64,000 nt of DNA. Source: Paraphysomonas bandaiensis (Eukaryota; Protista; Chrysophyceae). The notes below the pieces were generated by a model. That model was not told the origin of the DNA. It saw only the letters and a list, made by a program, of their open reading frames with translations, and made no database searches. Shown here in pieces: positions 21,600 through 26,824 of this stretch (the stretch's first letter is position 1; the number at the start of each line of letters is the position of its first letter). Where the stretch lies: contig CBFFRP010000169.1 in assembly GCA_965644295.1 (NCBI GenBank), positions 187,721-251,720 on the forward strand, written 5' to 3'. A program made the translations under genes and the position numbers.

Positions 21600-22596
21600 A
21601 ATCAGTATTCCAATACTAGACAACCAAGTAAGAAACCCTCATCATTAGGTGGAAAACTTCGTCAGGCAATTGAAGATTTACAAAAAAATATTCCTGTTAA
21701 TTGTGAAAAAAACAATTTGACTGATTTATTAGAAGAATATTTTCATTTCCCGTAAATCGGAATTAATTCTTCATGGTGTGTTTGCTGTAAATATTGGCGA
21801 TGAAGGGAAACTTCAGTTATACTCGGAAAAAGAGATTGAGGAATCAACTGCAAGAGAATTGTTTACTGAGCTATCGGGTGTTGACAATCGGGCTGATTTA
21901 TTGAATCGAATCACCGTGAGTGTGCTTTTACCTGCTGCAAAGTTTTCACCACCGATTGCTATAAGAAGTAGCTTGTTAGGTAGTTCTTCAATATTTGGAT
22001 ACGGAACTCTGACTCCTGTACTTGGAGAATTTGGCTTGTTTGGAATCACAGCCAAGCATTGTTAACTGCCTCCAACTGAACACCTACCAACAAGCGATGA
22101 ATATATTGATGTCTTTAGGTATCCGTTGTTGTCGAGCCTTACGACACGCCATATGCAGGAAGCCCCTGAAACGATTGGTGTGTTCTCAAATGAATGTCTT
22201 AGCTCGAATGATGATATTGTAGTTATAATGTTATCAGAGAACAATTCATATATGATTAATGAAGTTCACCCAGACATAACCATACGGTTGGGTGACAAGT
22301 CAAAAACCAAAGGTATTGCAACACGAAAAGGCAACGTAGTGAAAGTGGGTATATCCACATTGACAACGTTGGGGAAAATATGTGATATTACACCTGCGGG
22401 AGATTTTGTTGTAAGATCAATTCACTGTTGTTGTTTTGCAGCTCCGGGTGATTCAGGGTCATTGGTTGTATCATATAACAATGATGCTGACGATGGCGTT
22501 GTGCTAGGTATCATAACAAGGACACAAAATACTGGACGAGCGTGGTGTGTACCAAATTCGGCGTTGTACGATATTGACTTAATTAAAGATTGTTAA
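21600..22596 (+). pseudogene. Trypsin-like (PA clan, Nal1/Ssy5-like) serine protease, disrupted
   Basis: GTL...GITAKHC (His), DDIVVI (Asp) and FAAPGDSGSLVV (Ser) lie in one frame, 21778-22596, broken by TAA at 22063-22065. There is a frame change near 21750. Confidence 0.7.
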
Positions 22597-22898
22597 TTTT
22601 GTGTTGGGACAAAGACACATGACCTTGTTACATAAAACCATTTTTATTTTCGTAGGCAGTTAAGAGTTTGTTAATTAGCACAAAACAAAACATCATGTGC
22701 TGACAAGGTATCGAGTATCGAACAACAGAACAGTCTAGAACTATGTGCCAGAAGCACTAACTAGATCTACATAATAGTACTTGTGTTATCAATAATCAAT
22801 ACAACATGCATGATTACGAGAAACCCCACGCATTCTGGAGGGGCTAATCCAGTACCTTTCTAGTTTCTTGGTCTACACAACTACACAATAGTACATAC

Positions 22899-22949
22899 TA
22901 GGGCTAGGAAACAATAAATTGTATTGCAATATATTGTTTCCTATCCCCG
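22899..22949. mobile_element. 51-bp hAT-like MITE
   Basis: tagggctaggaaacaata...tattgtttcctatccccg; flanks gtacatac/gtacatgg (degenerate 8-bp TSD). Confidence 0.5.
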
Positions 22950-23456
22950 GTACATGGCACATACGTACATACATGTACTACATACATGAGCCAAGTATTA
23001 CCAAAAGAATTCCCGTGTAGTACTTTCTTCGCCACACACGGTTACATTATTGACTTTTTGTACAGGCCAGAGTGAAAATACTTTATGTTGTCAGCCAAGA
23101 TGGAGAACGGGGGTGTGGCAGGTAGGGAGAGCGTGTAATGTATAATTCGCGCAAAACCTTAGCACTATATGTGTCGCTTGCCTAATGTACCGGCGGTGAG
23201 TCTACACTGTGGCTATACTCTCGGAATGGGACAAGTACAGATAAAACATATATAATTAATCGGTGATTCAGCTTCTCATATTGAATTTTCATGAGCATCA
23301 TTATTTCAGGAAATAGAGTTCTTAATTAATATTTTCTTTTATACCATGAATTATCAGATATCCTTTTGGGATAGGCCATAGACTACTCATCGCAACAGCT
23401 GTGTAGAGAATATTACATCATATCTACTAGTGAGCGTTGCTCAATCTGTGAACAAG

Positions 23457-24461
23457 TTACTTGAGTATATGGTGAATCAGACAACGGAAAGCTTTCTTGT
23501 CGGCCTTCGATTTTCCTCGAAAAAGGTTCCAAACTGTGGCTTCGATAATGTCAGCTTTAGCATGATCGCTGTCACTGTCTTGAAGCCAATTCGACTCACC
23601 AAAAACATCATAAACTGCTGAGAATTTTGTGTTTGTGCAAGCATTAGTCACGGATGTCTGAACATCGCTGCTTTTTTTCTTCACCTCGTTGACAGCAAGC
23701 AGAAGATAGATTAACCTATCGCCGCAAAATTTAGAGGTAGAATAAGCGTCAAGATCTGGTGCACGTTGATCATTTCTGCTGTTGATCGTTATCTTCATGG
23801 CATCTTTCACAAGACTCTTTGCGTTTTCTTTTGGACTAGTACACAGATCACTGACCACATCGCCATAGCTTCTCTTTTCTTTGGTCGTTGCCTTTTGTTT
23901 GGCCTTTTGCTTGGCCTTTTGCTTTGGCTTTACCTGTTGTATGTTGCCAGGAGAACGGCCTGGGGACCACAATTCATTGTTAGCACTGGAAAGAGCACTT
24001 TTGACTTCTTCCAAGGTTTGGACATTTCTGCAGTGTACGGCATCTTTCAATGCGTTTTCTATATCTGGATACTCAGAACCTGAGCTCTGAGGCCAATACA
24101 CAATCACCTCTGCTGGTGCCTTAAAAAGAGTACTGACAGTTGAGGCAAACACATCGAACCACGTTGTAAAGCGCCGGGAAAGGGGATTACATACAAGTAC
24201 AATAGCCGCCTTTGTGACGTTATCTCTCTTCAAAGCATTGCTCAGTTGTTCAGTGGAGCTGCTATGGTTCTTTGAGTCAAGCCCAACCGTATCATAATAC
24301 GTATAACTGTCATCAGCAAACGTGTTAACTTTTTCTGTTCCGTCTTTGAACGGATCACTTGAGACATTAGCAGCAGTACTCACACCAGTGCACTCGTTGA
24401 TAAACGTGCTTTTGCCTACACCAGCAGCACCAAGAACGATCACAGCAGTATTAGAGCTCAT
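23457..24461 (-). CDS. P-loop GTPase (AIG1/GIMAP-like G domain) fused to a C-terminal RNase III-like domain, 334 aa, intronless
   Basis: G1 GAAGVGKST, G2 T, G3 DTVG. The C-terminus has SKFCGDRLIYLL (cf. LEFLGD) and KADIIEA (cf. ADxxEA). Confidence 0.75.
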   Translation of the reverse strand: MSSNTAVIVLGAAGVGKSTFINECTGVSTAANVSSDPFKDGTEKVNTFADDSYTYYDTVGLDSKNHSSSTEQLSNALKRDNVTKAAIVLVCNPLSRRFTTWFDVFASTVSTLFKAPAEVIVYWPQSSGSEYPDIENALKDAVHCRNVQTLEEVKSALSSANNELWSPGRSPGNIQQVKPKQKAKQKAKQKATTKEKRSYGDVVSDLCTSPKENAKSLVKDAMKITINSRNDQRAPDLDAYSTSKFCGDRLIYLLLAVNEVKKKSSDVQTSVTNACTNTKFSAVYDVFGESNWLQDSDSDHAKADIIEATVWNLFRGKSKADKKAFRCLIHHILK

Positions 24462-24915
24462 CCTATTAAGTATGTAATCTTATATAGATGTCTTATTGAA
24501 GGTTTAAATGAGTGGTTTAATATGTTGCATGCATAACAGTGTATATACCTCATGGTTGCATTGAGATCTTGAGATGGATATATAGGGACAGTTAGAGGTG
24601 AATATTTATATATAGAAAAATACGTAGAAAATCGTACTGATAGAGAGGAGTCTGGATATTCAGACAGCGACACACGCACAAGCAAATGGGAGACTATGGG
24701 GATATATAGCCAATCATATCTCCTGTAACTGTATTGGTGATATATGATTGGACAGATGTGTTTTGTCCTTTTTCTGGATGATTAACGTCTGCGGTATGGC
24801 GTGATATGCTACAGACTGCTGTGTCCATAGCACAACATCACATACAGTAAGAACAGAACACATATACATATACATACAGCCAGATACTGAAGACATCAGC
24901 CAACATCTGAGCGTG

Positions 24916-25731
24916 ATGGACTTCAAGGATAAAGTATGGCACACTGTGCAGTCCATGTATCACTTTATTGAAGCTGAAGGTACGGACAGAGATATCTTGA
25001 AGAGACAAATAGCAAACACTTCATTTTTCACAACATGTAACACAGATCGACCACAAATAAAATCATGTATTTTGACACGAAAATTGTGCTTTATTGACCT
25101 GATTATACCTCATGGCGTGACGCAAATCAGACAGCTATATGACGATGATGTGAATACACGAGAGTTCTATATTAAAGATCTTGTCTCACTTATGTGGACG
25201 GGATCAAAACAAGTTGACAGCAACAACCAGCTTATGGATGATGAACTTATTGCCATATCTGTTCAATGTGAAGAGGCGGTAATAAAAAAGCGCTGGATAC
25301 ACTTACTAACGACTTTTTATGCCAAAGTAATATTACTTCAACGAAGTCAACATGTCGATAGGCCTCATACTAAACGGAGATATGCAGAGAATATGACGAA
25401 TATTTATATTGGAAGATATTCTTTGGGACATATTGCCGTGAAGGGGAAAACAGTCGGTGATATTATCACTGATTGTGGACATGAGGATACCTTTCCTTCA
25501 GGAAGCAAAAAACGAATTATTATTGATGACGGCGTTAAGTATGAGTTAAATACGGTATATATGCCTAAGAAAGACTTTGGCGATTACAAAGCTGATGTAT
25601 ATTTTACCCCAAAGATGATAACTTGTATTGAAAATCATATTCAGTATCATTTAGGGAATGAAGTAAATTCCACTACCGTTCTCCATGCCAAGACTGCTGA
25701 AACAAAATATTTGGACAAGATGGAATATTAA
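24916..25731 (+). CDS. Hypothetical protein, ~271 aa, intronless
   Basis: Long ORF with globular composition, divergent from the GTPase gene. Confidence 0.55.
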   Translation: MDFKDKVWHTVQSMYHFIEAEGTDRDILKRQIANTSFFTTCNTDRPQIKSCILTRKLCFIDLIIPHGVTQIRQLYDDDVNTREFYIKDLVSLMWTGSKQVDSNNQLMDDELIAISVQCEEAVIKKRWIHLLTTFYAKVILLQRSQHVDRPHTKRRYAENMTNIYIGRYSLGHIAVKGKTVGDIITDCGHEDTFPSGSKKRIIIDDGVKYELNTVYMPKKDFGDYKADVYFTPKMITCIENHIQYHLGNEVNSTTVLHAKTAETKYLDKMEY

Positions 25732-26824
25732 ATATCAGTGCCTACCAAGAGAAATAACTTGACAGTAACCTTCTACCAACTCAAAACTTGCCTCAGTTAC
25801 AACTTGATATATCTTTCAAATCGCTGTTGTCTCATTTCTCATTTATTGCAACACTAGTAGTAGGAATATTCGCAGCCATTGCGTGGGATATATGACATTT
25901 ACCCATATGAAGTTCGTGCGTTTGTACCACAAGAGAAGATATTCCAGCAGTATTCTTTTAGACATTTTGTAAAACAATTTCTTGCTCTAGTTCTGCCTTT
26001 TAGACAAGTGGTTACATGCTAATAAAGTCCTAAAATTACTTGGGTTAAAGGCAAGCCAAAATGTAAATACAAATACTTTATGAGTTATTAGACATCCATG
26101 GTACATACAAACAAGAGTACTTGTATGAGAATAGATAACATAACTTTATCATGTAAAATTCACCCTAAATTATTGGGAAGCAAGCTTTCTAAAAGCTCCG
26201 GCTACTGATGATTCCGCACACTAGCCTTCCTGTCACCTTCATATGTTGAAGCGTTATATGTATTGCCTGCCAAATGTACCAGTGTCGAAATGAGCTAATC
26301 ACATATAAAATTTATATATTTAATCATTACTTCAGCCTCCCATATGGGCTTTTCACCTACCGTAGAGTGAGTTGAAAGGCTTTTTATTGTATTTCATTAG
26401 AATTTAGAAGATGTGTACATATGTATAACACATACTGGTGGTTGGTATAATGGTGGTTGGTATAAGAGTTACATTATATTCTCTTCATACCTCAAATGAT
26501 CAGATACCCCTTTGGAGATAGTGAAGCAAATTTCCGGAAGTGGCAACTCATCGCAACAATGTGTATTGTAAATGTTTTTGCCAAATGTACAGCATGTTAA
26601 CGTACACGTAATACACTGTCGGAATGGGGAAGCTATATATAAAACACGTATACATAGAAAAAATATACTTATAGTACTACACATTCCTACCATTAAAGGA
26701 AAAAAAAGCCAACCAGAATTGCTTTCAAAACACAATAGTTTACTATGAATTTATTGTGAGACCAGGCCAATACAAAAAAATTACATTGCATGGGCACTAC
26801 TAGTGATACAACATATACACCAGT

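Follow-up and report, generated by a model that had tools for sequence, protein, structure and literature searches.

We analyzed a 64,000-nucleotide (nt) window of the chrysophyte Paraphysomonas bandaiensis (assembly GCA_965644295.1, contig CBFFRP010000169.1, positions 187,721–251,720 of the forward strand; positions below are counted from the first nucleotide of the window) and found that it contains a real, intronless, expressed nuclear gene, which encodes one 334-amino-acid (aa) protein with both an N-terminal G domain and a C-terminal RNase III-fold domain. Both domains are known, and what is new is their combination, together with a conserved Glu-to-Lys change in the RNase III active site. 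The gene and the parts of its product are located as follows:

23457–24461, minus strand: coding sequence of the 334-aa protein, stop codon included (from the listing of open reading frames [ORFs] and an intact, 66% identical paralogue)
23347–24528, minus strand: transcribed region, unspliced, with a 5′ untranslated region (UTR) of ~67 nt, the coding sequence, and a 3′ UTR of ~110 nt (from RNA-library contigs)
23967–24461, minus strand: G domain, residues 1–165, a TRAFAC-class P-loop nucleoside triphosphatase (NTPase) (from Pfam, PDB profile, and fold searches)
23805–23966, minus strand: basic low-complexity linker, residues 166–219, with three KQKA repeats (predicted local distance difference test [pLDDT] <50)
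23460–23804, minus strand: divergent RNase III domain, residues 220–334, six helices (from an AlphaFold model, fold searches, and PDB profiles)

The ORF is intact and begins with ATG. An in-frame stop seven codons upstream makes an N-terminal extension impossible, so that the protein has no signal or transit peptide; its P-loop begins at residue 11. For the expression check, the contigs of four sequencing runs were compared with positions 22700–25800 of the window. In two polyA metatranscriptome runs, contigs covered positions 23347–23718 and 23712–24386 (run X12) and positions 23364–23956 and 23958–24508 (run X13), and a single 1156-nt contig from a run whose RNA status is only guessed (X8) matched positions 23374–24528 with no mismatches and no gaps. 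The flanks at 23012–23323 and 24572–24675 were not matched by any contig in X12 or X13 and served as an internal silent control. Because the RNA-library contigs are colinear with the genome and one of them extends across the whole ORF, both domains lie on one unspliced transcript, which bears out the earlier note on this DNA, made from the sequence alone, in which the gene was described as intronless and the protein as a single product. A relative is also present as a 'type:complete' transcript in MMETSP. Matching sequencing reads came from marine sources. The DNA of the window is nuclear and eukaryotic, and it contains large genes of a single exon, such as those for EMP70, an RRM protein, and DOT1.

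The genome contains one paralogue of the gene, on contig C247, which is intact, encodes 324 aa, and is 66% identical to the query at the protein level, so that there are only two copies in total. The synonymous divergence of the pair (dS) is 0.37, and the ratio of nonsynonymous to synonymous divergence (dN/dS) is 0.59 for the whole protein, 0.60 for the G domain, ~1.0 for the linker, and 0.37 for the C-terminal domain, indicating that both folded domains are constrained and that the linker is not. The linker, which the earlier note had described as basic with three KQKA repeats, is present exactly in that form. A slightly wider stretch (residues 166–235) has an isoelectric point of 10.25, and the KQKA units (KQKAKQKAKQKA) are encoded by a 12-nt tandem repeat of 3.2–3.7 copies at 23888–23931. 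The linker of the paralogue is nine residues shorter, so that the length of the linker changes by repeat slippage.

Judging from its sequence matches, the N-terminus is a G domain of the TRAFAC class, plausibly near the borderland between the Toc/GIMAP and Era proteins. Its main motifs are as follows:

24408–24431, minus strand: G1/P-loop GAAGVGKS, residues 11–18, in which G11, G14, G16, K17, and S18 are invariant in the 15 full-length family members
24282–24293, minus strand: G3 motif DTVG, residues 57–60, in which D57, T58, and G60 are invariant
24093–24110, minus strand: strand beta-5 VIVYWP, residues 118–123, at the expected G4 site, where NKxD is absent (from the family alignment; the strand is taken from the model)

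The Pfam family MMR_HSR1 (PF01926) matched the query (E = 2.6e-8; 34.4 bits against a curated cut-off of 21.9) and all 15 family members. When a profile of the 15 members was searched against the PDB, EngA/Der (1e-11), Toc33/34 (3e-8 to 8e-7), Era (3.5e-6), and GIMAP7 (3e-5) were retrieved. Of the label 'GIMAP/AIG1-like GTPase' in the earlier note, the G domain therefore stands, but the GIMAP assignment is not established: the AIG1 family (PF04548) did not match the query at E ≤ 10, MMR_HSR1 was the best family, and EngA ranked above Toc33/34, which ranked above GIMAP7. PF04548 was matched by 10 of the 15 relatives at E ≤ 0.01 (best 6.6e-6). A fold search was discarded as a means of placing the domain in a GTPase family, because Arf, Toc33, EngB, GIMAP4, Era, and EF all scored Z 11–13, with no discrimination.

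In the family alignment, G1 (GxxGxGKS), G2 (DGT), and G3 (DTxGLDS) are invariant. The G2 threonine is T42, upstream of G3, next to the invariant D40 and G41, and R97-x-T99 and V-Y-W are motifs specific to the family. The query shares G1–G3, including DTxGL, with Toc33/Toc34, GIMAP, and Era/EngA, and Toc33 gave the longest structural alignment (163 residues, Z 12.9); what the query lacks in comparison with them is a G4 motif, membrane anchors, helical extensions at the C-terminus, and a KH domain. Neither a KH nor any other RNA- or ribosome-binding accessory domain, nor a tandem G domain, was found in Pfam, and the scores against NCBIfam equivalogs were far below their cut-offs. The polyA metatranscriptome contigs differed from the window at two positions, 24314 and 24366; both differences are in the G domain, between G1 and G3, and both are non-synonymous (D50H and N32K).

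The C-terminal domain is a genuine but atypical RNase III domain. The C-terminus of the query alone gave no RNase III signal in Pfam, NCBIfam, or a phmmer search of the PDB, so that the domain-by-domain Pfam check proposed in the earlier note succeeded for the G domain (MMR_HSR1) but not for the C-terminus; an ESM Atlas feature search with the C-terminus also returned nothing usable (best score 0.76). Among the relatives, PF00636 was matched individually by 5 of 18 (best E = 1.5e-5). When a profile of the 18 domain sequences was searched against the PDB, 39 of the 40 matches at E ≤ 10 were RNase III, Dicer, Drosha, Rnt1, or the Entamoeba enzyme, with coverage of the whole domain; with 31 domain sequences, all 16 matches at E ≤ 0.01 belonged to the RNase III family (best 2.7e-5). 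An AlphaFold2 (AF2) model of the domain built from the 18-sequence alignment had a pLDDT of 88 and a predicted template modeling (pTM) score of 0.81, whereas a model built from the two paralogues only had been rejected as unusable, with a pLDDT of <50 in the C-terminus. In a VIA-align search against 48,161 chains, ranks 1–30 all had the RNase III fold (Z 10.3–6.3), and the next, unrelated fold scored Z 4.1. The top 46 Foldseek rows also had the RNase III fold (TMq 0.50–0.68), except two rows of a Toxoplasma conoid-ring entry. An hhalign comparison with the two RNase III domains of the host's own Dicer gave E = 4e-4 and a probability of 35% over the signature region only, with a two-sequence template that is too thin. 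The profile matches to the PDB, the PF00636 matches of the relatives, and the fold searches thus agree on the RNase III-like C-terminus that the earlier note had recognized. That note had named three outcomes as grounds for abandoning its proposal (no RNase III match, no transcript, and domains on separate products), none of which occurred. Its statement that the protein lacks a double-stranded RNA-binding domain (dsRBD) and a PAZ domain also stands: by Pfam there is nothing beyond the two domains, neither a dsRBD, PAZ, or helicase domain nor a second RNase III domain, and the protein ends immediately after the RNase III domain.

RNase III proteins fall into bacterial, Rnt1, Drosha, Dicer, and Mini-III architectural classes. 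The best structural match of the domain was EhRNaseIII of Entamoeba histolytica (5f3o, 5f3p, and 5f3q), which ranked first in Foldseek and scored Z 10.3 in VIA-align, with a root mean square deviation of 2.5 over 111 residues. Like the query, EhRNaseIII is eukaryotic, contains only one RNase III domain, and lacks a dsRBD. It must act as a homodimer or cooperatively, and even without a dsRBD this noncanonical Dicer cuts double-stranded RNA (dsRNA) (PMC5357909). The two are only ~13–15% identical, and they also differ in the Lys by which the query replaces the first catalytic Glu and in its added G domain at the N-terminus. The bacterial class 1 enzyme of Aquifex aeolicus (1yyk and 1jfz) aligned along the entire nuclease domain (profile positions 10–125 against chain positions 26–136, E = 1e-4 to 3e-4). 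The signature G-D and D..EA motifs align, and the dimer predicted for the query also forms via the signature helix, whereas the query has no dsRBD, has Lys in place of E41 and Ser or Gln at the equivalent of E38, and carries the added G domain. Mini-III of Bacillus subtilis (4oun and 6tnn; Z 10.1) is a stand-alone RNase III domain without a dsRBD, but it comes from bacteria and is not fused to an NTPase.

Elsewhere in its genome, the host encodes a canonical Dicer-like protein (C377:216520–217656), with a 1695-aa open frame, two RNase III domains, and intact motifs (ERLEF[LF]GD and AD.MEAL). A third RNase III-like gene (C451:113360–113605; 476 aa) has a degenerate active site (ALLGD and GTMVEA).

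Residue equivalences in the active site were taken from the profile alignment to Aquifex RNase III (YETLEFLGD), and family counts were made over 31 domains. The two motifs of the query are as follows:

23709–23741, minus strand: signature-motif equivalent STSKFCGDRLI, residues 241–251, with K244 at the position of E41 and G247–D248 at those of G44–D45
23538–23564, minus strand: second catalytic motif HAKADIIEA, residues 300–308, in which D304 corresponds to D114 and E307 to E117

The earlier note had claimed that the equivalents of Escherichia coli D45, D114, and E117 are kept and that Lys stands at E41, and by this alignment the claim is exact. The motifs it had quoted were all found as well: GAAGVGKST (residues 11–19), T42, DTVG (57–60), the KQKA repeats, KFCGDRLIY (244–252), TNTKFSAVY, and KADIIEA (302–308). 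At the position of K244 (Aquifex E40, E. coli E41), the 31 domains have Lys in 19 cases, Ala in four, Arg in three, His in two, and Cys, Thr, and Val in one each, with no Asp or Glu. G247 (E. coli G44) is Gly in all 31 domains, D248 (Aquifex D44, E. coli D45) is Asp in 28, D304 (Aquifex D107, E. coli D114) is Asp in 27, and E307 (Aquifex E110, E. coli E117) is Glu in 28. Beside D304, H300 (27/31) and K302 (25/31) are conserved specifically in this family. The spacing between the D45 and D114 equivalents is 56 residues in the query (D248–D304) and 58–74 residues in the relatives measured. Judging from this pattern of conservation, the active site is a coherent variant maintained by selection and not a product of decay.

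The isolated RNase III domain was predicted to form a homodimer with a score of 0.33, against 0.00 for the best control, and thus only just reached the mark that we used. Of 30 proteins solved as same-chain pairs, 21 reached this mark, as against none of 23 solved as single chains; among eukaryotic proteins the corresponding figures were 17 of 29 and none of 30, and of the seven eukaryotic proteins without an older solved relative only one reached it. The runs had at least 91% of contacts in common, the partner chain had a pLDDT of at least 72, and the predicted interface is symmetric and lies on the signature-motif helix (residues 238–271), where canonical RNase III dimers also join. The predicted dimer is a sign of likeness to these enzymes, not of binding.

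We consider the chances about even that the protein is an RNA endonuclease that works as a homodimer and depends on metal, that its active site is modified by a Lys, and that the nucleotide state of its G domain regulates it. The RNase III domain would homodimerize via its signature helix, as to our knowledge all RNase III domains do, and would thereby form an RNA-binding cleft with two active sites, each composed of D248, D304, and E307, with K244 replacing the first catalytic Glu. The dimer would cut structured or double-stranded RNA internally in a metal-dependent manner, probably with an altered metal stoichiometry or substrate preference, and the N-terminal NTPase would set the on-state of the nuclease through nucleotide-dependent self-association or conformational change. 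Catalysis, the substrate, the nucleotide used, the coupling of the domains, and the biological role are what we infer here, around a gene, transcript, domain identities, conservation, and family membership that were observed. Toc and GIMAP GTPases are regulated by dimerization (for Toc33, this is the title of PDB entry 2j3e), and RNase L and IRE1 are endoribonucleases switched on by the ligand- or nucleotide-driven dimerization of an adjoining regulatory domain. The query would resemble RNase L and IRE1 only in this proposed working principle, because their folds (pseudokinase plus KEN) are unrelated to its own, and this is an analogy without homology.

Several observations weigh against a regulated endonuclease. 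The only functional link between the G domain and the RNase III domain is the fusion itself. At the expected G4 site, neither NKxD nor TxxD is conserved in the family alignment, in which all members have V-x-V-[YV]-W there, and no recognizable G5 was found in the same alignment, which leaves guanine specificity, and perhaps also hydrolysis, unproven. The dimer score may derive from the memory of solved RNase III dimers. A scan of viral contigs found no relative, and the gene neighborhoods of the relatives contain housekeeping genes, with no conserved partner and no conserved defense-type neighborhood. EhRNaseIII shows poor binding and cleavage unless it is given a dsRBD (PMC5357909), and the query has no such domain. 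The position equivalent to E41 is never acidic in the 31 family domains, whereas deep mutational scanning of E. coli rnc found that no substitution is tolerated at E41, D45, or E117 (PMC10037077), and the E41A mutant of E. coli RNase III has weak activity in vitro and binds little dsRNA (PMC8708148, Table 1). Given this intolerance in E. coli, the consistent absence of an acidic residue means that canonical two-metal dsRNA cleavage may have been lost.

The same substitutions at the E41 position, to Lys, Arg, Ala, His, and other residues, favor an alternative that we regard as rather unlikely, although it deserves serious weight: that the RNase III-like domain is only a dimerization or dsRNA-binding module, a sensor or scaffold, mounted on an NTPase. 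Non-catalytic RNase III-like proteins of this kind include mL44 and mL57 of mitoribosomes and proteins of the trypanosome editosome. Such proteins were among the best fold matches of the domain (yeast mitoribosomal 3j6b_5, Z 10.1; RECC1 subunit 9dei_D, Z 9.9; and human 3j7y_c, Z 8.1), and in each editosome RNase III pair only one member is catalytic (PMC9508840). Three metagenomic relatives (P0001, 538 aa; P0003, 688 aa; and P0004, 624 aa) have lost the equivalents of D45, D114, and E117 and have an extra C-terminal domain with a putative nucleotidyltransferase (NTase) motif, GS...SD.D, the matches to which are weak (Pfam Polbeta, E = 0.006; an MNT-type NTase in the PDB, E = 0.034), suggesting that the fold can persist in this family without catalysis. 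These three proteins may represent a sensor or signaling branch of the family. Known pseudo-RNase III domains, however, usually lose the catalytic carboxylates, whereas the three carboxylates are kept in 27–28 of the 31 domains of this family, together with H300 and K302 beside D304, a degree of retention that is unexpected for a purely structural pseudo-nuclease. R3B2 of Mucor lusitanicus (6zdw; Z 7.1) also argues against a loss of activity: like the query, it combines three acidic residues with a non-acidic residue (N52) at the position of Aquifex E40, and it is still an active RNase, although it cuts only single-stranded RNA, because its dimer cleft is narrower (PMC8136814). It differs from the query in having two dsRBDs and no NTPase (PMC8136814).

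An exhaustive profile search with the two paralogues identified 66 proteins; after re-scoring with a hidden Markov model of the C-terminal domain, ~35 of them proved to share it. The family amounts to ~35 clusters at 50% identity among 1.84 billion representatives, and its members come from marine microbial eukaryotes. Its signature is [YF]-Q-x-[LM]-K-x-x-G-D-A-x-L ... N ... H-x-K-A-D-V-V-E-A, and the motifs of the relatives are closer to RNase III than those of the query (e.g., Y-Q-N-L-K-V-M-G-D-A-V-L and H-A-K-A-D-V-V-E-A-L). The search for paralogues and for the same architecture that the earlier note had suggested was thus productive, since besides the paralogue in the same genome, full-length relatives occur in other eukaryotic contigs and in transcriptomes. 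Other searches were less informative. A word-index search with the single protein gave no matches, and one with a 15-sequence alignment had its candidate list filled up by P-loop words and so gave nothing beyond generic G-domain proteins; a scan of metagenome contigs with the paralogue pair gave only one short G-domain match. The 'EcfA2' labels that some relatives carry in databases are automatic misnomers. No description of a GTPase–RNase III fusion and no named protein of this kind was found in the literature and database names searched, in agreement with the earlier note, which knew of no characterized protein with this architecture.

The family also bears on a second alternative, in which the protein is a housekeeping factor in RNA processing or ribosome assembly: an Era/EngA-like, ribosome-associated GTPase would bring the RNase III domain into contact with pre-rRNA or some other structured RNA, as with Mini-III on the 50S subunit. 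This would fit with MMR_HSR1, the '50S ribosome-binding GTPase' family, being the best Pfam match and with EngA/Der and Era being the top PDB profile matches, as well as with the best fold matches, which include Mini-III (4oun, Z 10.1; 6tnn, on the 50S subunit) and RNase III-like proteins of mitoribosomes, and with the ordinary housekeeping genes among which the genes of the relatives stand. However, with ~35 clusters in 1.84 billion representatives, the family is very sparse and so not universal among eukaryotes, and the gene evolves fast (dN/dS of 0.59, with paralogues 66% identical at a dS of 0.37). The protein also has no KH or ribosome-binding accessory domain, no organellar targeting peptide, and a non-canonical active site. 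We consider a housekeeping function improbable.

We favor a role for the putative regulated nuclease in RNA-level conflict, with viruses or transposons, over a housekeeping role, given that the family has few members, evolves quickly, and varies in architecture. The features of this type, all of them indirect, are the small number of clusters, the lineage-specific duplication, the relatives with an NTase-like domain and lost catalytic residues, and the presence of a separate canonical Dicer in the host.

The gene lies in a duplicated block (22754–25656) with ~76% nucleotide identity between the two loci. Within the block, it is paired with a divergently oriented orphan gene, and at both loci the two-gene island of 3.1 kb stands between diverged copies of a direct repeat, whose core spans ~100 nt:

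24462–24915, no strand: 454-bp intergenic region common to the two divergent genes, presumed from the gene geometry to be a bidirectional promoter
24916–25731, plus strand: orphan neighbor gene, co-duplicated, encoding a 271-aa protein (66% aa identity between the copies; two copies in the genome)
23285–23430 and 26415–26575 in the window, and 118618–118657 and 121728–121767 on contig C247 (1310–1450 of L002 and 2690–2830 of L004): copies of the flanking repeat (from a four-way alignment)

Repeat finding and self-BLAST detected no exact direct repeats bracketing the island in the window, and the ~100-nt repeat is visible only in the four-way alignment. One of its copies lies in or adjoins the 3′ UTR of the GTPase–RNase III gene. 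The occurrence of the repeat around the island at both loci suggests that the two genes were relocated or copied together as one unit. It also favors the view that the ORF is non-functional, whether as a chance ORF, a decaying pseudogene, or the cargo of a mobile element with no function for the host, as do the repeat-rich surroundings and the fairly high overall dN/dS of 0.59. Part of these surroundings is a hairpin at 22896–22952 that resembles a miniature inverted-repeat transposable element, with 26-nt arms; in the sequencing runs, contig depth at this site is very high and loose ends are numerous, indicating a high-copy dispersed repeat. This view is nevertheless largely refuted and in our opinion very improbable, given that two ORFs of 324–334 codons have remained intact at a dS of 0.37 with motif-specific conservation, that transcripts occur in polyA libraries of environmental populations, and that full-length relatives are found in many other eukaryotic contigs and transcriptomes, with only two copies in this genome.

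The paralogue of the orphan neighbor is at 2803–3810 of L002 (plus strand). The neighbor at 24916–25731 is covered by contigs in X8, X9, and X12. Its product had no Pfam match and no homologues, and the only lead was a sub-threshold NTF2-like feature match (0.84). It could be a functional partner of the GTPase–RNase III protein. The intergenic region between the two genes shows conservation only in the context of the duplicated block, and its 24572–24675 part is not covered in the RNA libraries.

Just outside the duplicated block, two ORFs on the plus strand (21778–22065 and 22126–22596) together resemble a split trypsin-like serine protease. The first ends with the His motif ITAKHC and the second contains the Ser motif GDSGS, and the pair has weak Pfam matches to Peptidase_S32, S64, and Nal1_C; the split between them could be an intron or a frameshift. 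Elsewhere in the 62.5-Mb genome, at least seven full-length silicon-transporter genes (PF03842) were found (on C348, C406, C398, C150, C298, C149, and C405).

The fusion of a G domain with an RNase III domain that has Lys at a catalytic Glu position, a residue common throughout the family, is outside all named classes of RNase III. At its furthest, the proposed role would make the family an unrecognized eukaryotic RNase III class of innate immunity, in which a Toc/GIMAP-like switch gates a Lys-substituted nuclease that cuts viral or transposon RNA independently of Dicer in this host and in other marine protists, with the NTase-bearing sister proteins acting as OAS-like signaling RNA sensors; in this complete form, we think the proposal unlikely. 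If the domain is inactive, the protein would be a conserved dsRNA-binding NTPase and a candidate RNA sensor. If it is active, it would exemplify an RNase III active site that is assembled and controlled in a novel manner, and would provide the host with a Dicer-independent, nucleotide-gated RNA nuclease.

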